The position numbers and the translations under genes were made by a program. A stretch of DNA of 64,000 nucleotides from the NCBI GenBank assembly GCA_013115145.1, contig JAAPAO010000025.1, forward strand, positions 61,687 through 125,686, read 5' to 3'. The notes beneath the pieces were generated by a model. That model worked only from the letters and a program-made list of their open reading frames with translations, had not been told where the DNA came from and searched no databases. How positions within the stretch are numbered: position 1 is the stretch's first letter; each line of letters begins with the position of its first letter. This DNA comes from Perkinsus chesapeaki ATCC PRA-425. Lineage: Eukaryota > Protista > Perkinsozoa. Of this stretch, positions 21,000-42,700 are shown in pieces.

Positions 21000-23900
21000 G
21001 TAGGCGCATAATTGCTGGCTCGATAGAAGGTCTGGCGGGGTACCTGTTAATGACGGGTACTGTAGAAAGTAAAAGACCCTCTTCTGGTGTTGGAGAAATT
21101 GGATTTAGAGTCTGAGATTGTCGGTGGAGTGATGGGGAGATTACTTTCGTAAATGCTAACTTTTACGAGTCTGTAAAATTGTTAAAGCTGGGAAATCGTC
21201 TGCGTTATTGGTTAGCAAATTCGTCACACTGACGATGGACAACGAAAATTTTGAAACTATCTAAAATGCATATTTTGCGTCTTACTGGTATGAACTGCTC
21301 CTGTAGAGCTTTGATGGGATATTGATGTCATGGAGTAAAAACAAGCTATTGATAATGCAAATGCTAATCTATGTAAAGATCTTCTACTGTAGTACAGTCA
21401 GTGTACTAACTTTACCGCACTTCATATACGTTTCACTGCCCTTATATGAGCAGTTATTCAGTGCGATATAGACTCCATAACATTCAGCTTGGTTAAACCG
21501 GTTCTAGAACCTCGCTGGTCCAGCAAGGTTAAAAATAATTTTTAATTTAGCGCGCGCCCATCTAATCGATTTAATCATTGGTAGTGAGTCGTTGTTGCTG
21601 GTGGTGGTTGTTACTGGATAATGGCACTAGACGTTAATGAAGCATTGGAGTTGGGGGATTTGGGGAATATATCAATTGATATGGGAGCTGTTAAAAAGGT
21701 AATAGAAACTCAAAGGTTAGGGCGGTTGCCGAGGACTTGCCCTACGTAGGTTAATAATTATTAAATTGTAATATATCATTCATACACCGCAACACATTCA
21801 AGCAACTCGTGTTGTTTAATTACTACTCGTTATTTGCTAGGAGCTTGGCTCTTGGGAGTAGACTTGTTTTACATAGGGACACCTGAGGCACATCGTAGTT
21901 GTTGTCAAATCCTATCAATCGTTCTATACTTGTATAGTGTTAAATCCGCTCCTATAGTTGTTGTCCATCCTAAGGTTGCTAAAAACGTGTTTGACGGTGT
22001 ATGATAATCTGAACTGATATACTGTATAATATCATTGCTAAGCTTCGACCGATAGTAATGCTTGGTTTTACTAGCGCTGGTATCTGATCTGTATTGATAT
22101 TTTATTATGATCAGATATTACAGCAAATAGTTGACCGGCAGAATGCGACAGTCGAAGCTACTGCTGGCTTTGGAGATGATATTGGTAATAGTCCACGGGG
22201 AATAGTGGTCGAATTATTATACGTTGTATTATCGTGATGGCACTCCAAAGCATGCAGGCTTGCTGATCTGTCAATCAAGAACAAACCTTTTTATAGTGGA
22301 ATACTTCTAATGGAGTTAACTGTGCTGTAGTGGTAAAATTATACGATCGTTCACATTATAGTTGTTGTGGAGGACACTATGGTTTAGAAGGGGGTATGTC
22401 AATTGTCAAGTATCGAGTGCACTGGGCAGCACTCTCCAATACCCCGTCAACAGTTGGACTATCAGTAAACGACACATGGTGCGAATTCTGCCAAAACGAC
22501 TTGCAAAAAATCCATTACGATCTACTATGTATTAATGACTATGTACAGTGTTATGTGGCAAGTGACGGCTTAGATGGGCTCAAGGCTCATCTGGAACGGC
22601 GCGAGTCCAAAGGTATTATTCAGCGGCGCCGTACTGAATGCACTACAGTATTACGGTGCTTGCCACGAGTTGCTGGCTTTGGCAACAGCACTACAGGTTC
22701 GCGGCTTTGAGATATCGGTGGTACTATTGAGGGGTGCTGTACATATTGCTGTAAATGGATTGCTTGCTATTGGAGAGTAAAAATGATACCTTTCGTATAT
22801 AGGCGCTTTGGCGTTAGAACGTATCTTAGCTTTATGCGTGCACGTTGGTATCTTTAGTGAAGTTGAAGGCACAGTTCGAAGAGCGTGGTGAAGTATCGGA
22901 GAAGTTGAGCTCGCAGCTGACGGATGTTATGGAGAAGGTTGAATCTATGGGTAGAAATGGAGGATGGGGGAATTGAACCAAGGACCTTTTTCAAGAAAGA
23001 CACGGGCCATGTCTATTGGGCTATTATGGTGCTTTATTTTAGGGGAAAGGCTGCGTGAATTGGAGGGGAGGGACTTAGAGGGTCTCCGGGAAAAGATGGA
23101 AAGGTAGCTTTTTAATTCAGTGGCGAAATTTCGGGGAAAATTTCCAAAAATATATTTGCTCTATCTCATAGGTATTCTCGTTTGTTGCACACTTGAACGT
23201 TTTTCAAGCTTAATAATTTCCTCACGAAATTTGGTCGCTTTTCCGAGGAGGATCAAATTCGGGCAAGGCCACCGATGAGCGTCCACTTGTGTGCTCTTCG
23301 GTGTATCTGGTAATGTTTTGGTAGAACGAGGGCAACACTTTAAGTTGACGCAATATTACATTGGTGAAAGCAGATAGAGCTCCGAGATGAACGGAGATAC
23401 GGATGATTGGTTGATCGATTTGTTACGAAGTCTCGGTGTGAAACGGTTGATCGATTTAGTATGTTGATAAAATATAACACTTTTTAGTCACGAAGAGTCA
23501 ATAAGAGAGCTTCGAGAGAAGACGGCGGGAGTTGACCCCGCGATAGCTAAATTGGAATTGGAGCAATCTGAGCTTATGAGCAAGTTTACAGGATTGGAGA
23601 ATAAAGTCAGCGAAAATGGCGACACGGTTAGAGCGATGAAGGTAGAGCGGAAGGTTGCGGGTTCGAATCCCGGCGATGGGCAATTTTGTCGTCTTTTGAA
23701 ACCTTGAAGATAATATTATTGTGATTTAATTGCTATGTTCATTGATAAAAGGGGAAAATTTTATGCCGAAAATTTCCGAGAATTTTTCCCCTCGAACGCG
23801 TGTTTAGTCTAACACTACTGGGTTGCCGGCGTCTCCAGATGTATGTGAAGAATTGGGCGTTCAATTCAGGTCAGTTGGGAGAGTACAATCCAGCCGACAG

Positions 23901-26640
23901 TCGAGGAGCTCAGAGAGAAGGTTAAATTGTTAACCTCTCGAGTATCTTGCACGGAGGAAGATATCGAGCATCTTCGGAAAGATATCACGCAGAAGGTGAA
24001 GAGGTCGCGGGTTCGATTCCTGGTTAATCTGATAGTGAATTGAATTTGTTTTTTGAGAATTATGCAATCTCGCAGTAATTTTGAAATTGCCGTCGGTACC
24101 AATATATTTTCTTGGAAGTATCTTTCCCTCTTTAGTACGGCGACTCTCTGTGGGTGGAAATACGTAATGCGGTGGAGAGAGTAAGCAAAAAGGAGTTTAA
24201 AGAGGTGGAACAAAGAATTGAATTAAATAGCGCAAAATGGTGAGACCGGGGATCGAACCAGGGACCTTTCGATTGCTCACTGCAGGCACGAGCGATCGAA
24301 ACAACTGTTAACGTACACAAGAGATCACATTTTAACTGCTGGTAGGGGGAATCGAACCGGGGACCTTTCGGTTAGTAAATTCAATTTAGTGGCGTGCGAG
24401 TTCCATGAGCGAAGATTGCAGCATCACGTGTTTTCGTTGTGGTTTCAAAGTCAGTGGGAAGCGATGAAGAGACGGGCGGCTATACGAAGGCTGGGCTCGG
24501 TGAGCGTCACGCGCCACGAAATTCGGGAGGGTATTTTGCTGGTTAGATATTCCATAATCATCAGAGAGCGGCGTTGTGGGGATGGCGGCAAAAGGCGGAG
24601 TTTGAGGGGTTGAGGGAGGGGGTGGAGATTCAGGTGAGGAAAAGTGGCGTAGTGGTGGAGGGGGCGATTGATAATCGCTCCGCGCAGGTTCGATTCTCTG
24701 GAGGGACGTATTGCTTTGTGCGTCAGTGTGTGTGGAAATCTTGTCGCTCACTGCGGACTTGTTGAATTGGAAAGAATATAACGCATAGATGGACGGGAAA
24801 AATTGAGAGGGAAAATTTATTTTCGGTAATTTTGTGAAAGGATTTTCCCGGTCAGGAAAATTTTTGCGGGAAATTTTCAGTATTTTTCAGATTAAAGGAG
24901 TGAAGGAGGAGATTGAGCGATCTGTTGGTGATGATATAAATAAGGTAAAGGAAGTAACGGATGAATTAATGGAAAAGAAAATTGATGCGGTCGAGTTCGA
25001 GCGGCGGACGGGAGGTACTATGAGGGGCTTGAAGATACGTAGGAGATATCTCCTATTATCCTATGATTCCACAGATGCTACCCGTGAGATAGTTGGAATG
25101 AAAGCAGATCGGTACAAAGAAAGATATTTTTGGTGCCACGATTGTGAGCGACGGGTACTTCAAACTTGATTCAGCTTTGAGATTTCCGGGGGAAAATGAA
25201 TATATCGATCAGGTGATCGATTACATGATATCTTTTAGATTCTGTTCGACCTCTGGAAACTCGATTGAATGAAATTGAAGAGTTGGTTCGGAAACTTGAA
25301 TCGGTTGAGGATCAGCCACCGTCGATGAGTTCGGTGGGAGGAAGGGAATCTAATAGGAGTGTTAATAGCAGTCCAAGGGAGGGAAGGTTGATAGAGGTAA
25401 TGTGTTGAGGAATTGCAAGATTTATCAAGATTGCAAGAATTGCATCGCGCTGATTTGGCGATGGTTTATACTGCATTCGCCATTGGCTATATATTTTCAG
25501 TTCCGTGAGAGTCTGGAGGGGGTAATAGAATCAGTGAGGGTTATAAGAGATGAAGTATTACCGAGGGAATATGCAACCAAGGAGATGGCATTACAGTGTA
25601 CTAGAGGTAATAATAAAGGAGGGCATTATTTTACTTTTCAACTCTATCGTTTATTTTTTCTGTGAGGTGAAAGAGTTGGTCAAAAATTTTTGGGAAAAGT
25701 TGGAAAAATTATGGTTCAGAATATTCAGTGTTGCGGTGAGAAGTTGGCTGAAAAGCGGACAAGAGGATAAAAATTAGGAAGTGTAAAGTAATTTCGGAAT
25801 CCTCAAAATAATCCAATTCATTACCGACTAACTCGCCAGCTTCCTGTGATTCTTTTCTTCATTTTTCATCGTATTTTTTGCTGATCGTTCAGTTTCAGAT
25901 GCATTGGAGTTGCATAAATTATGTCAACGACTGGATTCTACGAAGGCTGATCGATCAGAGATGGACGCAGCAGTACTAGAGACGCGCAATAGCTCACAAC
26001 GATTGGGTGAGTTCGGTGGGGGGTTGGGAGCGAAATCTCCAAGATGGCATTTTACTGGTGGCCCAAGCCTTCTTGGTATTATTTCTTGGTGGTATCTAGT
26101 CACTATCTATTTTGGGCTTGTGATATGCCCGATGGCACAACGAGTATCTCCCGGTCATCTTTCCGACATGCGCACTGTTATTTCCGAGGGACCTCGATCA
26201 AATATCCGGCGCGTGGCAGTTATTTCCGCCCGGCACGCATTTATCCGATTCGTTCATGTGCAATATCCGACGAGTAAAGTCATTCTAATATCCGCCCAAT
26301 TCGTGGTGCACGAATGTAACAGTGCGCATGTCGGAAAGATGAGCGGGAAATGCTGTACTACCCACACACTGGTCCAAGCTGGATGATAAGGTCGGCATGT
26401 AGTGTATGGTGGTGAATTGTGAATAGTTGGTTTATTATTCACAGAGGTTTTTGTATCCTTGGAATGTTATTAGATGCTTCAATTGGTGGTAAAGTCGAGC
26501 TGTTGGCGGCGCAGTTGAGAGAGGCAGAAGAAAAGGGGAGAAAAATGGAGCAATGGTAGTGGGGCAGGTTTAACAGGGGGAGGGCGTGGGTTCGATTCCT
26601 ATCGGAGAGAAGTAAATTGTATTTTTTCTTCCGCGAAGTT
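21000..26640 (+). CDS. Large multi-exon coiled-coil protein gene (possibly two genes), boundaries approximate
   Basis: Frame-consistent splicing gives KVESM|GERLRELEGRDLEGLREKMER and ELNSAKW|HERSKQLLTYTRDHILTA|VACEFHERRLQHHVF. Further exons SHEESIRELREKTAG and LDSTKADRSEMD. Confidence 0.6.
22951..23042 (-). other. Plus-strand intron containing an antisense degenerate tRNA
   Basis: Reverse complement has A-box-like TAGCCCAATAGACATGGC and B-box TGGTTCAATTCCC. Flanking exons join in frame. Confidence 0.7.
24240..24285 (-). other. 46-nt plus-strand intron starting with an antisense tRNA T-arm
   Basis: Reverse complement reads GAAAGGTCCCTGGTTCGATCCCCGGTCTCAC. In-frame splice. Confidence 0.75.
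24342..24389 (-). other. 48-nt plus-strand intron starting with an antisense tRNA T-arm
   Basis: Reverse complement reads GAAAGGTCCCCGGTTCGATTCCCCCTAC. In-frame splice. Confidence 0.75.
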
Positions 26641-26849: not shown

Positions 26850-28450
26850 GCGGCAGTCCAGCTCGCCCGCCCGACCGCATTGCACTCTAAAGAATCTACG
26901 TCACAAAACCCGGTAGTCATCTCGACTTGGTCAACTACAGTAACCCTTATTATCATCCCGTTGAAGAACTTAACAATTAATATCATAATTATAACAACAT
27001 ATCGATAACTCCCTTGACAATATCCCATATCAGCAGTCATCACCGCTTTCTGAGTTATTCATTTTACGCGTCGTTTTTCAATATTTTCCTCTACCATATC
27101 TTCATTTTCGTCCGGTGTGAATGTTGTGGCTTTTCTGATGGAATGTTTTCCCTTGTTCAGTCTGTCTACAACCGAGTCGGCAGTGGCGGGCCAAAATAGC
27201 GCACTACAAAGAATGAAAGATACGCTTGTAAAGCTATCAGACTTCACTCAGGAACTCATCGATCGTTTTGTCAATCTTGGCAGTGAGGCAGGAGGTCGGA
27301 AGAATCTTTGTGTGAATGCGTGCAAATATTTTTTCAAGGTTCAACTCCGAGAAGTGGTGCTAATCTGACGTATATGGTGCGGACAGGCGGAGGGTATGAA
27401 CCGAAGGAATATACAACATTGAAGGTAATTGTAAATCGATTATCTGGGCGCGCGCTTTTTACAAGGCCGGTCAGGTTGGTGGTGAAGAAGGCGGGGTTGT
27501 GAGGATACCGGGGGTATTTGATGGTGGAGAGGAGAAGGACTCAGCGATTGATAGGTGAGATGGGTTGGTGGGGATGGAAGTGACGTTTGCCCAGTTGAAG
27601 TTGGTCGTTTGTCCAGAATCAGGGATTTGCTGGTGTTAAGCTATATATGTACATCAGGAATACACTAGATGGGAAGTTAGTCGCAGGCTCTCATTTGTGG
27701 TGAATTAGCTTTGCACGCTGACTCCCGGTTGGTAGTGGACGCATACTGTATGGAGTTTTACCGATTCCTGTGGTTGCTGGAGCTTCTCTTTTGTCAACCG
27801 TCAAACCTGTGGATCTCTCGGGACATTCTAGATACCTTGATCCAGACTTCTTCATAGTGCGACAGGTATCTTCAGCATGCCAGAAGTGTCATTGAGCGAG
27901 CAGCATCAGCATCAACTTCGAGGATGAGGAGCAGCAGCAGTGGTGGTAGGTTTCGGGTTCTTGGGTACGCTCCCGACCGCGCTTAATTGCCCATCCGAAA
28001 TAATCAAGTAGATTGAAGATCATCATCAGGTCGAGCACGGTCACGTTCTAGAGTGTATCGAACTCCACCGTCAAGGGAGCTTGTTCAGCCTAGAGGGGCA
28101 GCGGTGGGGACGCCAGTAGGGAAGGTCGTGGGTTCGATCCTCGGGAGTGTATTTTTAATTTAGGTTGGCGGACGGTATATTAGAGGAGTTGGCTTTGTAC
28201 ATACAAATTGACACATTTGACAAAGGTGTTCCTCATGCTATCAGCGACTGGCTTGAGTTTTGTGGCGCGCGGTCGGGGAGGTGGGGGGATTTGTATCTCT
28301 TTCAAAGGGACTCTTTGTAGTGAGGAATTTGGCTGTAAGATTTTTCGTATTTATCAATCTCGGTGGCGCTCAAGTTAACCTGGAAGATATCTTTTAAGTT
28401 TTCGCCTGTTATGTCCTCATCGACGTGTGTCCAGGACGATGGTCCAGTGA
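26850..28450 (+). CDS. Hypothetical multi-exon protein, boundaries approximate
   Basis: Exons such as MKDTLVKLSDFTQELIDRFVNLG, VVDAYCMEFYRFLWLLELLF and IELHRQGSLFSLEGQR|LADGILEELALYIQ (in-frame across intron 28104-28163). Confidence 0.55.
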
Positions 28451-28749: not shown

Positions 28750-31637
28750 CCGCACGCCATGAAATATATTTAGAATTTACGGTGAAGATACCTCAGGAGA
28801 GCTCGAGCGAGGATATAGACCCGACCGGTAGGTGACGTGGAAAGGGGACAAATTGCACAAAACTTGACGGGCGTTTTCGAGTGTTAGTTGGCTTGTCCTA
28901 GAAGTTCTTCGCTGAGACACGGTAAAAAATGGACGAGGGGTTTTTCCGAGAGAAAGTGTAACACTAGTACAGGCTGCCAGGGGAGTGACGGGAGTGGCGG
29001 TGGAAGAGCGTGGCGAAACGCGCGTACTCTGGTTGGATTTCATCTTAGTGGAGCAACGGGATTGTGTCGTCGAGTTTTAGGAGGAGTTTTTAAGAGGTCC
29101 CTAATAGGCGCAACTCAACCGTGAGAGCAATGCTCCCAGAGAATCAACTCTTCGGCACGGTTATCACTGATAGCATGTCAGTCCGATAGATTCAGATATG
29201 TTATGGAGATTTAGGTTGATGATTTCAAAAGATCCAACTTGAATCTTTTAACTTGTTTATTTTTTAGGTTGGATGTTGTGGCCTGCTGCTCGGTGTTTTG
29301 CTGATTATTTGTCACTGCGCCCCGAAATTGTACGCGATAAGGATGTGCTTGAACTGGGCAGCGGTAAGTCAGTCAATTTAAACACTTTGAGTTGACCAGG
29401 AAACGGTATAGAGTCTAGTGCTGTGTAGTGAAAGTGAAGTATCCTTTCACTTCACGGCACCGGTGAAACTCCAGTGTATTCGGTGAACCATGATTCTACC
29501 ATCGATTGAGAAGTGGCGAATCCTGGCAGCAACAAGCGTCCCTACCTCAGTCGATTGTCCACCAGAGCCTGTCGGAGAACTCCTAGGGCTAGTCTAGCTA
29601 ACTCTAAGAGTTAGCCGATGTGTGTGAGATTCCCACTGAGAGTCGCACACAATATATGATGATTAGGCGTACATTTTCCTCTCATCTTCGAGTAATCAGC
29701 AACCGGCAGCGCAACAAGGCTATGGTGGAAGAGCTTTCTTATATCGATACTCAAGTCTGTTAGAAGAGAATTCGGATAGTTGGAATCTATAAGCGTTCAG
29801 TTTGTATTCAAGAACAGCGCTACTCCCTTCCTGCCGGATTCGGGTTTGACTGGTATGACTATCGTAATGCCTGTCGTATGTCGTAAGTCGTGTGACTATG
29901 GCTGTCGTAATAGTACAGTTGTCGCGTACAAGCGCGGTGCATCGTCGGGTAGTAATGGACACTGTCCAATGAAGAGCATGACTTCACATTCCATCGAGGA
30001 TGGCTTATCTGCGCGGTAACAGAAGCAAAGATGCAAAATATAGATGCCACCTACAAGCTTACTGTGAGAATCGTGACTTGTGATTCACAAGTAAGATTAG
30101 CAAGATCGCAAGAATCTCTTGTCTAACACAAGTATCTTAAAGCTACTGTAAGCTTAGTGCAACTACGATTGTCTAAAGTAAACTCATAAACTTTGCTGTA
30201 TATATTTTTATTCCACAAGTCCTAATGCTAATTCGTTATCAATTCGTTAACTATAAGTTCAACGAGAGCCAAGTACAGCAACACTTACCTTAAAAGGCTT
30301 CCCCGTTCTTATGCTAGCGGTCAGTGACAGCAGAAACCAACAACCTTTTCAGGTTGGTATCCGGGACATATTTGGTCTGATAGACCAATATGACTTGGGA
30401 GTTTTAGTCTGTTACTTCTGTAACTTGCAGAATTGTTCTGGAATCTAAGATGGTAAATGACGAGTCGTCATTTACCATCTTACCGTCATTGACGGCGATT
30501 CACTAGTGGTTCACTAGCCAGATGGTTCTTCCACTTGAGATGTGAGTACTGCCTGGAAAAGTTTTTCACACATCGACATACCTCTGCGCCTGCTTCAACG
30601 GAGAGACCATAGACCCAGCCGCGCTGTTACATATGGACTTGTTCACATCTACCAATCAAACTACGGTGCTACTCCATTCAACCCAACGAGCTTCTCTACT
30701 ATCACGGAACTGCAGATTATCTAACTCAAACAACGTCGCGTAACGATTGTCTGCGGGAGACTGACTCAACTGGGCTGCTAACGCCTGTTACAGTGCCATA
30801 TTGTCTAAAGATATCATATATGTGCACAAGTGTGAGTCTTTCTACGTGTCCCGGACATGGTGTCCCTCAGTGCGTTGTGTTACGACACCGTGTATTTATT
30901 TGTTTGAAATTAGCAGGGAATTTAAATCGATTACATAGACGCGCCTAGATATATCAGCAGGCACTGGATTTGGTGGGATTGTGAGCTACCTGCTGGGTGC
31001 GAAATCTGTGATATTAACAGATCTCCCGGAAGGACTTGATCGATTGGATGAGAGCTGCCGATGTAATGGTTTGCGTGAGGTTGAGGAAATACAAGTAAGT
31101 TCAAGATTGCAAGATAAGTGTCATAACTCTGTAAGGTACGATCGTGTCCGTGGGGTGACATGCAGGCGGTTGAGAAGTTACCAAGGCAAAGATTCGACGT
31201 GATTCTTTGCTGCGAGGTGAGATCCCGGGATATCTTTTCTTGCATGAAATGCACGCTCGACGTAAAGATAGCTGCGTCTCAGGTCCTCTATAAACAAGGT
31301 GAAGAAGTTTATGAGGATCTGATGAAGACTATAAAGGCAACAGCAAAGCCTGGTGGAATTGTATTGGTGGTAAGAAGCGAATTTAATGGTGCGCGGGAAA
31401 TGTATCTGCCTTTGCTAATGATTTTAATTGGATCGAGAACTTGTAAGAAACGCGAAAAACGTTCCTGAGCTCTGATGTCGGTGTCTGGCAAGAAGTCCTG
31501 GCTAGGTTTACGAGTACCGTGGATCGATGCTGGAAGATCAGTACATGTTTGATCTTCTATTTGATGAGTATCCCGATGGTAGAATGGAAGTGTTGGAAGA
31601 AGGTGAAGATGACGACTGTGAAAGAAGATTATTGTGA
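28750..31637 (+). CDS. Methyltransf_16 (METTL21/EEF2KMT-like) SAM-dependent protein methyltransferase, 5' end uncertain
   Basis: Spliced DIDPTG|WMLWPAARCFADYLSLRPEIVRDKDVLELGS|GTGFGGIVSYLLGAKSVILTDL...FDVILCCEV...LMKTIKATAKPGGIVLV. Stop at 31635-31637. Confidence 0.85.
29364..30960. mobile_element. 1.6-kb intron expanded by inserted TE-like DNA
   Basis: About 20 times longer than neighbouring introns. Several hairpins. A minus-strand fragment GRKGVALFLNTN resembles the APE endonuclease of non-LTR elements. Confidence 0.5.
30446..30495. repeat. Perfect 18-bp palindrome plus a small hairpin
   Basis: TAAGATGGTAAATGACGA-G-TCGTCATTTACCATCTTA, then CCGTCA-T-TGACGG. Confidence 0.9.
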
Positions 31638-32220
31638 GGATGGGGCGCGCGAGAATTGTTGGTGCCTAAATTGGATCATAATTTTATTAGCTTGCCCAAA
31701 ATGTCTTCGGGAAAAAAGATTTGGACTCAACATGTAAAGATTTCAGGGTTGACTCTGAGTTTCGGGTCCTGGAGAATCCTCGTCGATAATTTTTATAACT
31801 TTTCCGAAAATTTTATCTTTTTTTGTCAGATACGTTTTTCCTGTTCCTCTCGACAGCTCAGCAGCAGCAACAACCACCAATTCGTAATGTGTTCAATTTA
31901 CCACATCATTGTGATGAATTCCTACGTCATCAAGGTTCTACTACGTTTCTCCTTCAGGGAAGATGAAAGTTTAGTTGGATCTTGCGATCTTGCTTCATCT
32001 CGCATTTCCTCAAATCATTGCTGACGAGAATATTGCTTGAACTTGTCCCAAGTCCGATTGACCTTCATAAGTGGATCTTGCAATCTTGCTCCATCTTGCA
32101 TTTACTTAACGCCGTTCAGTTCCTGTTGTTTTCTCCTAGTATATGTCAGTAGCAGCATCCGTAGCTAGTAAGAGCTTGCCTATTGAGAGTGCTGCAAGGT
32201 TGAGTGTGCTGCAGTCAAGG

Positions 32221-34774
32221 ATTAGAGGGATGATGTTGGGTGGAATCATTGGGGACTGTTTTGGGACAAGGTGACCTATTTTGTATCTTAGCTTCGATAG
32301 ATCCCCGGAAATTTTTTTTCACGGTTGGAATATCTTCCGGCTTCCCTGAGTTGAATTCTGTGATTTCCTTGTCGGATTGTCGTGGAATAGAAATTTTTCT
32401 GGCGATGCAGAAATCGCCGAAATTTTTTTCAATTTTTTTCCTCGGGGAAAAGTAAGACATGCCGCGCACGTGTATTCGAGCAGCGTGGTTCAAAGGAAAA
32501 TTTTACGACATTTTTCGGGAAGAGTGGTATGATTTCAACGTGGATTTTCGGGAAAAAACTTCTCTTCTTTTGGAGTCCTGTATTTTGAATCAGGTTCAAC
32601 GATGTTGGCGTTGGAGCGCTACCGATGATGGATGTTGCAGAATCTATGTCGTATCGTACTTTAGCGCCTGCCCTATCCAAGCTTTCGAATGGGAAATGGC
32701 TGTTCAGACTATCGTCCGATGGGTATATGGTAGGGATATCGACCCCTTGGGTATCTTGCACACTTCAAGCTTAGATGCTGGAAGCGACGAAGAATGTTCT
32801 TGATGGTGGTGACAGTAACAGTTTGAGGGAGAAGCTGGTTGGTTTGATGACCGACCCGAGCATGAACCATCTCAAATGGGGGTCTGGCATCACTTCAGTG
32901 AGCAATATCATAATCGATCAGATGATCGATTTGTGTCTCAGGTGCTCTCCGGCAATGCTCCCAAAGCCAGCGAGCTCCGCGGGAATACCGTGATGGTCAG
33001 AAGTCTGCCGGCTGCACTTTTCCCCGATGAGGAGTATGAAAATATTTTCTATCAGGTGAGAAAATTTTTTCCCTTGGAAAAATTTCCCACAAAAATTTCG
33101 CTTTTGATTACCTGCTTACCCTCCGAAATGGTCAGGGATTATGACTCGCGAAATAAGTCTAGCTTACCAGAAGTGAAATGGAAACTGATATGCACGATGA
33201 TGGTTTTCTGATGCCGAAAAGATAACGCATTTCCCGCTTAGTTGGCGGATGCTGTTCCTACTCATGAAGTGGCGAGAAAGAAGGCTAAGAGCTTGGCAGA
33301 TGCTTGCAAGGCTGCACTTAAGAGTGGAATATTCGATCCTACTATGATTAAGGATAAAGCGTAGGTGTTATGAATCTGACCTATTCGGTATCCTCCATGT
33401 TGTAACCAATCTCGCATCTTTCCATTCTAACCTATCTCGCATCTTTCCATTCTAACCTATCTCGCATCTTCCCATTCTAACCTATTTTGTACCTTCCCAT
33501 TCTAACCTATCTTCTATCTTCCCATTCTAACCTATTTTGTATCTTTTAGTACCGTCTCCGCCCTTCAACTTGCCACTCCAGCAAACTACGATGAAATTTC
33601 TATGAATCTTCAAAAGAGGCTGGCTGCTCGAGTAGGCATATTTCGTGGCGCGTGAGAAACGTATTACAATATCTTAGGTTGGTCAAAATGCCATGGCTAG
33701 CACTACTCTTCCTGTTGTCGCTTTTGCGATGAAGCAAGGTGAAGTCGGCGAGGAAGTTCACGGGAAAGACGAGTGAGTTTTTGTACATTGGAAAAGTATC
33801 GATGAGGACATTTCTGGAATTTGGACCTAGGTGTGAAAAATTTAGAAAAAACAACTTCGTCTGATCAACTGGGAGAAATCTGATGAATGTTAATTTCTGA
33901 TGTGGAGAAGCTTTATGAGGTCTCATATAACTTCTCGTACAAAGGCACAGTAGTTGACAAATAATTAATAATTTCTATGGCCCAATCCCGTTGTAGTTGA
34001 GAGAAACAATATTGAAGTTGCTTTGTTCCATCAATTGTACCTTTCTAACTTTTATGGTATTCCTTTTGTGATAGCTTGCCCTTATAGGGCTTATGCTGCT
34101 TTATTATTTCAATAATAGTTTCACGGACTTCTGCCGAGGATGGCTTGATGAGATTTACTGATTAGGACAACCGAGATGGGTGGCATATCTTTGGACCCTT
34201 CCATGTTCTCACCGAACATTCTCAACAGAAGTAACAGACTCGATCTTGCACAGGAGTTTTACGAAGAGACAGCAAATGCCAGCCCTACGTTTGGTCAAAA
34301 CGGTAAGCTGTTCGGCTTTCATTCTAAAAGTCGTTGGTTCGATCCCTGCATCGCTTATTTTTAGAAATGCATTTGATACTGAGTTGGGCTATCAGTTGTG
34401 GTGGCGACACTCGTACAAGTGGCTGCCTCGCTGGTGCCTTGGCCGGAGCGACGTAAGTTGGGAGAACTGAAATCGAGGTTCCTGGTTGTGGATCCGACTT
34501 TCCCGTCAACTTTCGCGGGAGGCCATTCAGCATAGGCTTAGTCTTCCGAACTTAATTCAATGGGTCCACTTCTACTATGCTTGCAAGGTACGGTGTGGAA
34601 CAGATTCCCAACGAGTGGATAGCGACTTGTGAGGGTTCCAAAGAAGCCATCGCAGTTGCCGACAGAGTCTTCGATGAGATATATCTAAATAATCCAATTT
34701 TGCTCGAATCGATCGTGCAATCGATTTCCGTGCCAGTTCGAGAGGTTCATGTTCCCGCGGATGGAACAGCATAA
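32221..34774 (+). CDS. ADP-ribosylglycohydrolase (ARH/DraG family), 5' end uncertain
   Basis: IRGMMLGGIIGDCFG, RGNTVMVRSLPAALF, WAISCGGDTRTSGCLAGALAGA, YGVEQIPNEW. Confidence 0.85.
33409..33547 (+). repeat. Intronic minisatellite, 25-bp unit, about 5.5 copies
   Basis: ATCTCGCATCTTTCCATTCTAACCT repeated with divergence. Confidence 0.9.
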
Positions 34775-35128
34775 AAAATGCAGTTTTTCCCGTCATTCGC
34801 CAGCGATTCTTTCGCTCAGCGCGCCGCGTAACCGGCGGCATGTTGAAAATCTTCACAGTGCGGCGCAAAGATACGGTATCTTAGATACCCTTCTCTACCA
34901 CCACTCACTTGTGTATAATGAGCATCATAGTCGCATTGTTCCTCTATTCCGTATGAATTCGGTCCGACCTATTTTGTATCTTATAATTTCGTGGCGCAGC
35001 GGTTTCTGCAGTTTGTGTGTTACTGTCACAAAAACAAGGTATATTTTCTACAGAATGATTCGTGTTGCGTTTGTCAATTCACAAAAAAGGCGGAGCGAAG
35101 TTTTCTTGACATTTTCGGATAATCGAAA

Positions 35129-38100
35129 ATGAACGAGTATGAATACATCTACACGAAGCTCAGGAAGGAATTCGGAAAGTGGGCGGAGCGAAGCGCTTCA
35201 TGTTTTACAGTTTTCGCAATGCTTTATCAGGTATTGCGCTTTTAGCGACACAGATCCAAAGATGCTGGCGTCAGTTGAGGGGAACCCGGATGCCATGAGC
35301 CAATATAGGTGAGAGTCTTGCCGTCTTACCGTGACTTGTAATTCCTCAACGGTATCCTAAGGTTGAGCATGCAGGATATATGGGTCGGATTGTTGCAGAT
35401 ACAAAAATCCATGCACATTAACATTCGACAACATTCCAGTTATGTCGGAGCATTCTGTTAATACTGACACAGTGAAGACAGGGAATAAAGGGCAGGTGAG
35501 CAGCGGGGAAGCCGACGAAAATTCCGGGAAAAATCTCCTCATCGTACAGGTTTTACGGTACAGTATGCGACAGCTGAAAACTCGGTGTGTGGACGGGCAA
35601 AAATTCCGACGAAAAAGGAGTTATAAAAAGCTGGATTTAGGGGCAGAGAAATATGAGTAATTCAATGGATAAGGAATTGGCTCGAAACCCTCCATGCTTA
35701 TCGAGATTTTTGCCAATCCACCCCGCGTTCGTAGATGTCGCGTACTGCGCCTCCTCCAGGGTAATCGAACAGTCGCCGGTTCGATTCCCAGAAGCGGTAT
35801 GTTGTGATGTTTAGTATCATTATTATTTAGGTTCACATTGAAGGAGGTTGGCCAAAAGAAGTGGACTATAGCGAAGCGCAGGACACTGCAAAGTGAGGAG
35901 GGTGTCTTCATTGGCTTTTCGAGCTTCCTGAAATGTGTTGATTATTATGGCATTCGATGAGGCCAGTTCGGACCTCACTTGGGTAAAGCTGATGGTATAT
36001 TGTCAGTCTTGGCTCGGTGAGCTATAGAAGGACAAAAAGTATTGTTAAACCCCAAGAAATGATTTTATTCTTTTTCTTCTCTTCAGAAGAACCTACGTCG
36101 AAATTTCTCCGCGCGCATACGTACTGTATTGCCTGACTGGTGAACAGCGATGTTACCCCAGTTGTGAGCAAATCAAGCCGGAAAGGCCGGCGCGCCTTGC
36201 TCTGGAATGGCATCGAATCCTCTCGAATGGAGGTTCACATTTTCCGCAAGTTCGTATCCTCGCTGCGTCAGTAATTCACCAAAAGTGAGATCTTGGAAAA
36301 TTGTGACCAACAGACGGCACGACCGAATGGTTAATTCCGTATGCGCAATAGAAGGATTTCCCAATCAAGGATTTTCCGGCCCGTTTGAAATTTCCGAATC
36401 TTTTCTAATTGATATATTCTTTTTCAGATGGAGAAAGCGTCTCGATAAAGATCCTCAGTTTGGCGCGGCGATGAAGTCTCTGTGTGGAGAGGTCGAGCAC
36501 TTCATCGCTCAGAACAGTAAGATCTCATTTCCGGAATCTTCACCAAAAATGGGTGCGCGTGCGAGTTGCACGTCCATCGTGGCGAACGAGATCTGGAAAT
36601 CGGCGTTGCTGTTCATTTTGGGGTTTTCTTCGAAGAAAAGAGAAGATTTTTGGAAAAAGAAAATTTAGGAAAAATTTTCAGGCACAATCGACATGTTCGA
36701 GGATTACTTCTCGGGCGAAGAAGTTCAACACCAAATGCAAACAATGTCGACCAGTACAGTTGCAGTGTTCCGCGATCAAAGTAACAAGAATAATATCAAA
36801 TCGATCACCTGATCGATTATGTCTCAGACGAAGAAGGCTATGGCAGAACTGTGTCGAGGATATCTTGGCATCCTGAGGGGGGCCATAAATTCATTGCCAG
36901 TTACTCGGTATTAACACGTTGTTTTAGATAGTTACGGATAGGTGGAGTTGTCAGGTTATGCAGTTCCAAAGGTTGGATGATCCTATTGGGCAATCAAGCT
37001 TCATTTGGGACGTAAGTTGGTCCAATTCAACCTCAAAAATATCTTCTTATTTTTCAAGGTTGAGAATCCTAACGTTCCTGTGGGAGAGCTCCTCCCTCCT
37101 TCCCCACTGATATGTACGCAAGTAAGTTCATTTCGAGGCGCGTGACGAATTGGCTAGCATTTCCGAATTGGAAGACCTCCACGGCTTTGAGACGTGAATT
37201 CTAAATGCATTTTGTTTACAAAAAACGGAGAAAAGATTCTCTGAAATTTTCCGGAAAATTTCAGTTTTTTTTTCAGTACCAAACAAGGAACCCCGATACC
37301 CTAGCTGGCGGGGCATATAACGGATTAGTCTTCTTCTTCGACGTTCGACAAGTAAGAGGGAATTCCAGGAAAAATGATAGAGAGATTTTTGAGCAAAAGA
37401 ATGGCCGACATCTTCATGCAGACATGGTTATCCTTCAGAGAGGTATTTTCTCTTTGACTGCTTGAGTGTGACAGATGAGAGTGAATCCGAAATCGTGGCA
37501 GAAATTTGCACCCCGATTCTTCCGAGAAAATTCATTCGTTAGCTACTTCTGTGACAACCAGAGATGAGAAGCTTGGTGGAGTGCTAGAAACGGTTTCGAT
37601 CATTCGCACTTGGGCGGGATATTTCACGACGAGCAAGATCGTCGTGTTCAGGCGACGAAGCCGGTGGGGAAATCTTCATTTGAGCATTCCCATCATGACC
37701 CGGTCTACGACTTCGTTTGGCTGCAGTCCAAGACTCACAGTAAGAATAGCGTAGTGGTTAGAGACTCGAGCTCCCTTGGAGAAGGTATCGAGTTCGATCC
37801 CTCCGTTTTGTACAGGTGAATGCGCGACAACTTCAACTGATGGAAGAGTGCTCTGGTGGGATGTTCGTAATTTGTCCGAGCCAACTGATGAAGTTATTCT
37901 TACGGACGGCAATCGAGAAAATCCAAAGCAGCTTGGTGAGCCGGGACGAACATGTTAGGGGGAAAATTAAAGTGAAGAAAATGAACTTGGAACTGATTTG
38001 CGCTTGGATCTTATCCGATTGAGGCAGTTGGTCAGTCCAGTTTTTTTGGCGGGGGTCTCTTCTCATGAGGAGGATAAAATAAATTTCTGAGGAAATTTTG

Positions 38101-39789: not shown

Positions 39790-42700
39790 ACGACGAGCAC
39801 GTTTAGGAGGAGGTGAGGATTCCTCAGGAGGAGCAACGGTCCCCTTGGCCTCCTTTGGTGTCAGTAGTGTACATTCATCTGAAGGGATTGGTAACAATAA
39901 TGATCAAAAGCAGACTTACTCGATGGGCGACCTTCTAAGATATCGGAGAACTGAACCATGAATAAATGGTTATCTCTGTCATGGAAATGGGATATTCCTC
40001 GATCCCAAACGTCAACCATAGCAACCGAAAACTCATCATTAACGATCTGAGAAAACCCCTACATAAAAACCAGATGTTAGGACAGAACTCACTTGGTGCC
40101 AGTAACCGGGCGGTATAATGACCATCTGAGAAGAGGCTGCTGAATAGTGAAAAATTAGAGCAAGCTACATCGCCTGGATGAAGTGTCATGAGCTTGAAGG
40201 TTGCCGGCAATCCTTTCATCGTTTTCCAATTAGTAAAGTATCTATCACGAATGGAGTGATGGAATGCGAGAGTTGGTAGATGTGGCCCTACGTGGTGTCA
40301 AGCACCATGTCCTGGCCATTAGTGAGGGGTATACCCCGCCTGGAAGAGCCAGTTTGTGCCTTATCTGATAAAACAAGAGAATTATCACCGACCAAGTCAA
40401 ATATGAAATCAAGTCTTATATCGGCTGTGTGGTCTAGTGGTATGATTCGCGCTTCGGGTGCGCGAGGTCCCGGGTTCGATTCTCGGCTCAGCCCATTTTC
40501 TCCAGAAAATACCGTCTTACTGATAAATGTTTCCATCTTCGAACGCTCATCATTACTGAACGTTATCACCGTTTTCTTCCCCTCAATGCAGTACCTAACG
40601 ACGTCCTCCAGCTCAGAAATCCATCCACACTACTACAGTGTCGCAAACCCGTTGTCTTCCCTATCAATGTGAATTACTGAGTAACTTCCGGCCTCTCCGA
40701 CCAAAAGACTCGGGCCTTGCCCTGACTCATGTAACGGGCATATTTCAAATGGGTAAATATTTGCTACTGTTTCAACCTAAACGTTCCCGTCCATCCAGAC
40801 CTCGGCAACCCAATATTACAGTATCGCGCTCATACGCGCACTGGCCATATACGACAGTTTTCTTATGTGATGGAGCGGCGCCCAAAACCTGTTGCGCGAT
40901 TCCCTGAACGCCGCTTGTATCCTATTACATCCTTTATAGGGCCTTGGGCTACCCTCTTTCCACCACCTCCGCCCAGCTCAACGTAACTGACCGAGATCAC
41001 TTCGACGAAGACCGACGCTTCGACTGCCTACCCCGGCATCTCTCGCTCTTGTACCTCATCAAGTGTGAGGATCTGAGCCATATCACATCTTCCGTCATTG
41101 TGTGGCGTGTTCCTACCACCGAACCCAGCGGTCCGCCGCCAACGCCCTTGCTCGTCACAGTCGACAACGATGCCGATGAACCAGATTCTAATCGTGCCCT
41201 CAAAGTATCTGTGTGCAGCTCGAGTATGTGAGGGAAATGAGAAGTGAAGTGATCGAAATGACATAACCAATTAGGCCTAAAGTTTGCACTCCTACTGGCA
41301 CCCCTTGGTACAGCGGGAATTTCAAAATTCCATCGATCTGAGAATAGTTTATTACCAATCCTTCGATAATTTTCGAGTGCTGCTAAGCTCCCTTTACCCG
41401 GTTTACCTATAGGGACAAGCTTCGAATATCTCAATGTTAGATGGTCCAATACGGCCCTGTTGTATTCTTTAGGCACCGGTCGATGCATTATAACCAATTC
41501 GTGTAACTGATAAGGCACCCATATGGCTTGATGAGATGGAATAGACTCACATCTGGAATGCATCGAAATAAGCAACAATTTTCATACATCGTACGTTTGC
41601 CTTTCCCTCGAGGAACCAGCAAGTCCTAAACTCGCCAAAGCGTCCATAAAAAGCCTACCGGTCCTACCTCACCTCGACAGTGACCACCGGAAGCAGCCGA
41701 CACTTCTCGGAGAATTCTTTCTCAGATAATGTCTCACGAGGATCTTCGTCGTCCCATCTAACCTAGGCAGGTTCGATCCCTGCCCCCTCCATATTTAATC
41801 GTTACTCTATAAGTTTTGGTCTTGGGTCGCCAAGAGCATACCGTCCCAGTATAATATCTACATGCTCGCCTATTAAACGAGCCCTTATTCCCCAACCTAC
41901 TGGTTCCCGGCGTCCTCGAACATCATCTCAAAGCGCTTACCGATCGCTTCCTCATGAAAGATGCCAGCTGGGCGGGCTTTAATGAAAGGCTGCAGAGCTG
42001 GTTGATCCAATGCAGGGGTATACATCCAAGAGTAAACTTAAAGGCAACAGGTTGGAAAATATTAGATCTAGTACATGTCGAGGAGAAACGAATAGATGGG
42101 GTCTAATTAGGGTCAACCAGGAGTTGCCGATTTCATCGGATGTGTGTGCATGCCGATATGTACTGTATGCTACATCTTCTATCCAATAAACAACAACTTT
42201 CACTTTAATACATTCCCGAATCGGGGAGCTACGTCCAAAAGTATTTCCAGTAATCGACGGTTATGTCAGTGCCCGTAGCAGCTCACTTGTAAAGGATCTT
42301 ATCTTAGGAAACCAACTGTGGATGTGGAATATAAGGAAATTGTTATCCGGACCAACGATCAGTTAATACTCAAACAGTGACATCACCGGGAAAACCGTAC
42401 GCATGCACATAGCTAATACCGCTTCAATTTTTTCGAGCGGTGGAATTCTCGAGAAGCGACCATCCTATGGTTTGCAAAGCTTGATGAGTAAAGCTGTAGC
42501 AGGTGGGTGATGGTTCGCCCTGTTCAATAATGACCCTAGATACTCTGAGTTAAGATGCTTCTATTGTAGAACCCCTTCTATTTCAGTTGAGTTGGTCTCC
42601 CGAGAAGGATGCATAGTTACCACAGTTTTTTTGACGCATTTTACCAGCCTGTGAGGGGAAAATTCAGTTGAGGAGAATCTCATAAGGATACTGTGGGGGT

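Follow-up and report, generated by a model that had tools for sequence, protein, structure and literature searches.

The Perkinsus species studied here is a parasite of shellfish. The stretch of DNA analysed here, referred to throughout as the window, comprises 64,000 nucleotides of Perkinsus chesapeaki ATCC PRA-425 (GCA_013115145.1, contig JAAPAO010000025.1, positions 61,687 to 125,686 of the forward strand); it is eukaryotic and rich in short GT-AG introns. This study focuses on one of these introns, located in the gene for an ARH3-like ADP-ribosylglycohydrolase (ARH), and on an apparent relic of a tRNA gene that spans its 5' splice junction. The A box of the relic is exonic and the B box is intronic. 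The two boxes are those of a type-2 promoter of RNA polymerase III (Pol III). All positions given below are those of the window.

The host gene and its RNA-verified splicing

RNA contigs from two runs of the same organism were placed on 28850-34840, and none of the listed runs has contigs over 22.8-28.8 kb; donors outside the ARH gene are predictions. Nine GT..AG joints taken from these contigs delimit the ARH gene, and the features of the gene and of the junction are as follows.

32200-34774, + strand: host gene, ARH3-like ADP-ribosylglycohydrolase, with at least 10 exons; nine introns given by RNA joints, frame open throughout
34166-34302, + strand: exon 8, ending in ...SPTFGQN and the first base of a Glu codon (RNA joints 33772>34166 and 34301/2>34364/5; translation)
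34285-34302, + strand: tRNA positions 1-18 within the coding exon (Rfam register); positions 1-7 are now unpaired with the 3' acceptor strand
34292-34303, + strand: A box (T8 to G19), TGGTCAAAACGG, which fits TRGYNNANNNGG (12/12 columns invariant in four Perkinsus lineages)
34292-34307, + strand: 16-nt block TGGTCAAAACGGTAAG, the A box plus the donor GTAAG; longest invariant run of the ARH locus
34303-34364, + strand: spliceosomal intron of 62 nt, consisting of relic positions 19 to 73, oligo-T and AG (RNA joints; Rfam alignment; orthologous introns)
34333-34349, + strand: T-arm relic, stem with 4/5 pairs, exact B box GGTTCGATCCC at 34336-34346 (B-box scan; T stem 3-5/5 pairs across orthologues)
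34358-34364, + strand: T5 run, resembling a Pol III terminator and also a polypyrimidine tract, followed by the acceptor AG (sequence; T runs in 4/4 orthologues)
34365-34452, + strand: exon 9 (EMHLILSWAISCGGDT...), with ARH-fold helix 2 and the GGDT motif (RNA joints; translation; solved ARH relatives)

The P. marinus orthologue of the gene (P0009) scores 35.1 bits with Pfam PF03747, for which the cut-off is 26.2, and contains the GGDT motif; its closest solved structures are those of ARH3 (E = 1.7e-10). Across exon 8, the protein of the window is 77-89% identical to its orthologues. At the junction itself, two contigs of run X1 pass from 34302 to 34365, skipping 62 bases with GT..AG ends, and the joined frame reads ...SPTFGQN|EMHLILSWAISCGGDT... 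over the joint. The intron 34303-34364 is therefore real, as both the RNA joints and the continuous open frame show, and the splice with an in-frame FGQN junction that had been proposed from the sequence alone (the original prediction) is confirmed. All 13 RNA-verified donors of the window resemble GTRRG, with a pyrimidine at +3 in none of the 13.

A second RNA contig of run X1 covers 34402-34747 with 18 listed differences in exons 9 and 10, mainly at third codon positions, and has an identical joint between exons 8 and 9; it represents a divergent allele or paralogue in the sequenced culture. In the deposited P. olseni gene model (L004 10001-14484, P0001) the upstream methyltransferase is merged with ARH and the last ARH exon is missed. 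According to the RNA contigs, methyltransferase and ARH are separate exon chains in the window.

Anatomy of the tRNA relic

When 20-42 kb of the window (22 kb) was scanned with the Rfam tRNA model (RF00005, cut-off 29 bits), the segment 34288-34353 scored 20.3 bits (E = 5) and was the sole match other than the tRNAs. In the register of this alignment G18 is 34302, G19 is 34303 and U20 is 34304. The 5' cut of the spliceosome thus falls between G18 and G19, and the donor is G19-U20 of the D-loop; for the ARH intron, the RNA joint and the Rfam register together bear out the proposal that G18|G19-U20 serves as the 5' splice site, so that splicing leaves the A box exonic and removes the B box with the intron. 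From G19 to the B box there are 33 nt, a distance shared with the real tRNA-Pro of the window. On the 3' side, the T arm is followed by seven bases, one A, five T residues (34358-34362) and AG. All of the elements of a type-2 Pol III promoter are thus present at the junction: an A box, a B box, the spacing of a tRNA gene and an oligo-T run downstream. The tRNA spacing that had been noticed earlier therefore stands; the Glu-like anticodon loop noticed together with it occurs in the window copy only and is not conserved among orthologues.

A functional tRNA was considered and rejected, as 20.3 bits is below 29, there is no ARAGORN call and the stems are not maintained. ARAGORN reported nothing at the ARH junction and only four true tRNAs in the window, all of them elsewhere.

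Promoter boxes beyond chance in the window

The window contains 12 exact B boxes, GGTTCGANNCC, with 0.35 expected, and an A-box-like motif precedes a B box by 30-37 nt in five cases, with 0.29 expected. These five pairs at tRNA spacing consist of two real tRNAs and three relics, including that of ARH. Compared with the tRNA-Pro of the window, the orthologous copy in P. marinus gives z = 6.9 against shuffles, and the two have in common TGGTC (positions 8-12) and a string in the variable loop and T arm. The enrichment of B boxes and of A plus B pairs, the spacing, the similarity to tRNA-Pro and the T5 run with AG together indicate that the end of exon 8 and the intron are a decayed, nearly full-length tRNA gene. 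TGGTC (positions 8-12), together with AGGTCCCGGGTTCGA in the copies of P. marinus and P. olseni, suggests that the relic may be of Pro type.

Near-identical copies of the relic were not found in the window, where just 11-16 nt of the T arm recurs. An active family of short interspersed elements (SINEs) or introners was accordingly rejected, since no part of the relic but the T arm turns up again in the window.

The tRNA-Pro (40423-40494) is 100% and the tRNA-Trp (58201-58274) 97% identical to P. marinus (L005), with flanking genes at about 70%. In P. marinus, synteny leaps from ARH to the counterpart of the window's 56-58 kb region.

Conservation across Perkinsus lineages

Four lineages were compared: the window, P. 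olseni and two P. marinus copies. Orthologous loci were taken from P. olseni GCA_013115135.1 (about 78% exon identity) and P. marinus ATCC 50983 (about 73%); these identities set the window apart from both species within Perkinsus. A query with exon 8 (45 residues) retrieved Perkinsus proteins only, two of which are prokaryote-style open reading frame (ORF) calls that run through the orthologous introns. The junction with its relic is also found in P. olseni and in both P. marinus copies, with a distance of 33 nt from donor to B box and zero indels. The B box lies within a short GT-AG intron, at an orthologous position that is kept in the sister species; the motif GGTTCGANNCC is exact in the window copy and has one mismatch in P. 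olseni. Judged by these alignments, the arrangement is older than the split of the three Perkinsus species. The numbers of invariant columns in the four-way comparison are given below.

A box: 12/12
Donor GTAAG: 5/5
tRNA positions 24-51: 8/28
B box: 8/11
11 bases after the B box: 2/11

In a four-way MAFFT alignment of the whole locus (2.2 kb of exons and introns), the longest invariant run is TGGTCAAAACGGTAAG, with 16 nt, and the runner-up has 11 nt. Gene-wide, the third base is kept in 35 of the 170 codons with an unchanged amino acid (21%), whereas the three codons under the A box, GGT, CAA and AAC, are all invariant (3/3; P about 0.01 when the rates of two-fold and four-fold sites are taken into account). 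No comparable synonymous invariance on the exon side was found at the other exon ends of the ARH gene.

The cloverleaf has fared differently. Over the four orthologues, the acceptor stem keeps 1-3 of 4 pairs, the D stem 2-3 of 4, the anticodon stem 0-4 of 5 and the T stem 3-5 of 5, and the anticodon loop is different in every copy. A conserved RNA fold was therefore rejected, as pairing in the acceptor, D and anticodon stems is poor and varies from copy to copy. As the A box and the donor are invariant and the B box is largely so (8/11), while the cloverleaf has decayed, selection appears to have acted on the two promoter boxes at a fixed spacing, together with the donor, and not on an RNA fold.

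The exonic A box might nevertheless have arisen by chance, in which case only the intron, i.e. the 3' two-thirds, would be a relic, and the conservation of the exon would come from an exonic splicing signal or from codon preference. A G|GTAAG donor by itself dictates G18, G19, U20 and A21, the 5' strand of the acceptor stem is unrecognisable, and a genome with many relic introns is expected to contain some chance cases. These considerations are opposed by TGGTC and A14 at the exact tRNA distance, which by our own estimate has a probability of roughly 7e-4 per site, and by an isotype signature of Pro/Glu type that matches the T-arm side of the orthologues. Moreover, the relics at 23627 and 26556 also have an A box in an ORF at 33-nt spacing, and exon-side synonymous conservation is seen at no other donor of the ARH gene. 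We consider a chance A box to be improbable.

Other relics and their donors

The original prediction went further and held that the D-loop donor recurs in the same register at 28104, 26556 and 23627. The GTRRG consensus of the 13 verified donors fits the D-loop of ARH (GTAAG) only, and the recurrence was mostly not borne out. Listing every frame-compatible GT/AG pair around each relic proved far too permissive, and donors were judged by the consensus and by comparison of the window with P. olseni. The relics concerned, with two that serve as counter-examples, are as follows.

26545-26599, + strand: second relic in register, with the B box at 26589, G19 at 26556 and an ORF that ends at TAG, which is T20-A21-G22
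23616-23670, + strand: third relic in register, with G19 at 23627, the B box at 23660 and a better donor candidate at 23642
28104-28163, + strand: claimed fourth case, with a one-mismatch B box (28131) at a distance of 27 nt from the GT and an alternative donor GTAGG at 28116
24633-24697, + strand: counter-example, full-length relic with A box 24645-24656, B box 24687 and a consensus donor GTGAG 21 nt before G19
37740-37815, + strand: counter-example, intron containing the whole relic, with the donor GTAAG as tRNA positions 1-5

At 28104, the GT is 27 nt, not 33 nt, from the B box in the window and in P. olseni alike, and P. olseni reads GTTGC there. GTAGG at 28116, 12 nt downstream and in the same phase, is conserved in both species. 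The site at 28104 is thus off register and is probably not the donor.

At 23627 the register was correct, with a tRNA-like A box, TGGCGACACGG, 33 nt from the B box, but the D-loop is an improbable donor: its GT reads GTTAG in the window and GTCAG in P. olseni. A better in-frame GT, AAG|GTAGA (GTAAT in P. olseni), is found 15 nt further on at 23642, at the anticodon position. Over the 15 bases in between, the window and P. olseni show three changes, one of them synonymous and two conservative. The A box of this relic is exonic under either donor, and the D-loop is probably not the one used.

The 33-nt register also holds at 26556 (34 nt in P. olseni), where the ORF closes at TAG or TAA, so that an exon or the coding sequence (CDS) ends at G18/G19 in both species. 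A search for a frame-compatible acceptor of the proposed splice found none: the conserved AG at 26637-38 leads to an immediate TGA in both species, and the next conserved exon, at about 27340, needs phase 1 and not phase 2. The P. olseni annotation that joins the parts of this locus is unreliable, as it merges ARH with the methyltransferase next to it as well. Either the CDS ends here or the site belongs to some other exon structure, with the D-loop as a candidate donor.

In a survey of full-length sense relics in about 117 kb of Perkinsus DNA, four (24633, 37740 and two in P. marinus genes) have GTRRG 17-31 nt before G19 and are thus predicted to be wholly intronic, one has GTRRG at G19 (the verified case of ARH), and the others are ambiguous. 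A consensus donor at or ahead of tRNA position 1 was the commonest arrangement in this survey. Other candidate donor sites of the relics are at tRNA position 1, in the anticodon loop and in the variable region. The D-loop donor is therefore one verified and conserved case, an occasional outcome and not a general rule.

The full-length relic at 24645-24697 is well preserved, with an Ile-like GAT loop on a good anticodon stem, and lacks an ARAGORN call; it is intronic, lying just past GTGAG. The orthologous P. olseni intron has no B box, and the relic is thus either younger or was lost there.

Origin of the intron

The ends of the ARH intron coincide with landmarks of a tRNA gene, as the intron starts at G19 and stops where the T run does. 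A tRNA gene could have been inserted directly into the CDS, with its D-loop GG|U becoming the donor, its oligo-T with AG becoming the acceptor, and its first 18 bases remaining as six codons, in a route of intron gain that could be repeated. The number 18 is divisible by three, a T run with AG also ends other relics, and the Perkinsus protein is about nine residues longer than a generic ARH (P0011) directly before the junction.

The surplus, however, is nine residues and not six, and the Asn encoded by tRNA positions 15-17 corresponds to a D/N that the family conserves 13 residues ahead of GGD, in ARH3 as well as in bacterial and archaeal ARHs. The Gln preceding this Asn is the first residue of the Pfam match, and from this Gln-Asn pair to GGDT the alignment with solved ARH3 structures is free of gaps. 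As the Asn is family-conserved and the Pfam match runs from the Gln, no more than about four of the six codons could be additional. Upstream of the junction, alignment to solved ARHs or to Pfam is absent but for the last two residues. Metazoan ARH3 has a comparably long loop just upstream of the conserved Asn.

Homologue searches with the P. marinus ARH returned only Perkinsus proteins and one distant ARH; an orthologue lacking the intron was not found, and all of the reachable orthologues carry it. Insertion is also opposed by the D-loop donors, which did not recur as claimed, and by the lack of a young or multi-copy family. The alignments do not support the insertion of exactly six tRNA-derived codons; some added length would be possible, and the comparison is weak evidence against this origin. 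Overall, direct insertion into the CDS appears to be unlikely.

Alternatively, the whole tRNA gene may first have been intronic, with the donor at or just before position 1, and the donor may later have shifted by 18 bases, preserving the frame, to GGTAAG of the D-loop. The four full-length sense relics whose consensus donor precedes G19 by 17-31 nt would represent the starting condition, and the D-loop of ARH alone fits the consensus of the 13 verified donors. A trace of the upstream GT at the expected place is, however, present in none of the four orthologues, the objection from the family-conserved Asn holds here too, and the derived state is found in all four lineages, with no intermediate seen. 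Such a migration of the donor is rated as quite unlikely.

Proposed explanation

The reading that we favour, with a probability of about 60%, is that a tRNA gene copy, ancient and by now decayed, lies in the sense orientation astride the ARH junction, and that its two boxes have been kept as a DNA element. As the cuts are made at G18|G19 and after the T5 run with AG, features of the tRNA gene provide both splice signals. In this reading, the spliceosome took over GGUAAG of the old D-loop and D stem for its 5' splice site and the T run of the old Pol III terminator (T5) for the polypyrimidine tract, with the 3' cut after T5 and AG. The A box, lying over the Gly-Gln-Asn codons, and the B box would have been retained as a DNA site, the putative role of which is the docking of TFIIIC and possibly of Pol III. 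If the boxes are such a docking site, the segment 34292-34307 has three functions at the same time, those of coding sequence, A box and 5' splice site.

Several points weigh against this explanation. The Rfam match of the single window copy is below the 29-bit cut-off and is weak alone, and the exonic 5' strand of the acceptor pairs at just 1-3 of 4 aligned positions. The P value of about 0.01 for synonymous sites comes from three codons in four partly related sequences, two of which are P. marinus copies. Conservation on the exon side could serve the splicing of the ARH intron instead of Pol III factors. Finally, the intronic A box of the DNAI2 relic is conserved at only 6/11 positions between the window and P. 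olseni, which argues against a general maintenance of A boxes.

A broader version of the explanation would have the complete type-2 promoter selectively maintained over the exon-intron junction of an RNA polymerase II (Pol II) gene, with bound TFIIIC or Pol III affecting transcription or splicing of the host gene, or chromatin organisation, within a genome-wide system of tRNA-relic introns. This version is conceivable but doubtful.

Additional conserved motifs of the locus

The last ARH exon contains, at 34705-34727, a near-perfect 22-nt palindrome, GAATCGATCG.GC.ATCGATT.C, which encodes ESI(A/V)(R/Q)SI. The DNA of this palindrome is almost invariant in the four Perkinsus lineages, and it contains the second-longest invariant run of the locus. 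The motif AATCGATY occurs 19 times against 6.4 expected, an approximately three-fold excess (32912-32931, 36799-36818, 34707-34726, 27434-27441 and others), often as an inverted pair with a gap of about 4-5 nt in short introns. The pair in the ARH intron 32898-32941 is invariant in the four lineages, and in an intron of a coiled-coil gene at about 27434-27470 the arrangement AATCGAT...GGGCGCGCGCTTTT is kept between the window and P. olseni amid diverged surroundings. An ORF query for the coiled-coil gene in additional species yielded no candidates.

An 18-nt string, GACCTATTTTGTATCTTA or a near-match, is found at 32273-32290, 33530-33547 and 34966-34983, i.e. at the start of an intron, at the end of an intron and downstream of ARH. 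The recurrence of this string accounts for an RNA contig that has a loose end at 32290.

Significance and comparison with known systems

The ARH intron provides a verified case in which features of a tRNA gene give the donor (GGUA of the D-loop) and the acceptor (the terminator T run with AG), and with it a concrete route that connects copies of tRNA genes with spliceosomal introns. The papers searched held no account of spliceosomal introns derived from tRNA, be it in Perkinsus or in other organisms. What is new is an exonic A box in a relic that spans the junction and is better conserved there than the B box (12/12 versus 8/11). The most conserved DNA of the locus is the block of A box and donor that overlaps codons, and the idea of factor docking is thereby extended from the B box to a promoter of A plus B boxes. 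The junction is also a sharply defined site for chromatin immunoprecipitation and mutagenesis.

The fungal introner-like elements offer one comparison (PMC3609843, PMC4457414). As in these elements and in introners generally, the edges of the ARH intron are edges or features of a discrete element. The ARH relic differs in having no near-identical family and in being old, as it is present in three species, and the relics of the window derive from different types of tRNA. Conserved coding sequence flanks the ARH relic, and at this degree of divergence a target-site duplication would not be expected to have survived.

In the exonisation of Alu and tRNA-derived SINEs, a retroposon supplies an exon within a pre-existing intron (PMC2394776). 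Here too, a Pol III-type sequence is used as a splice site in a Pol II gene. In the case of ARH, however, the element is the intron itself, it appears to have neither the body nor the tail of a retroposon, and its promoter boxes appear to be under purifying selection.

The extra-TFIIIC (ETC) or B-box-only sites of yeasts and mammals are mostly intergenic and contain a B box only. Like the ARH relic, ETC sites are conserved Pol III boxes without a functional tRNA, which suggests the docking of a factor and not an RNA product. TFIIIC has been linked to three-dimensional genome contacts (bioRxiv 10.64898/2026.04.27.721182). The Perkinsus case differs from ETC sites in that both the A box and the B box are present and span an exon-intron junction.

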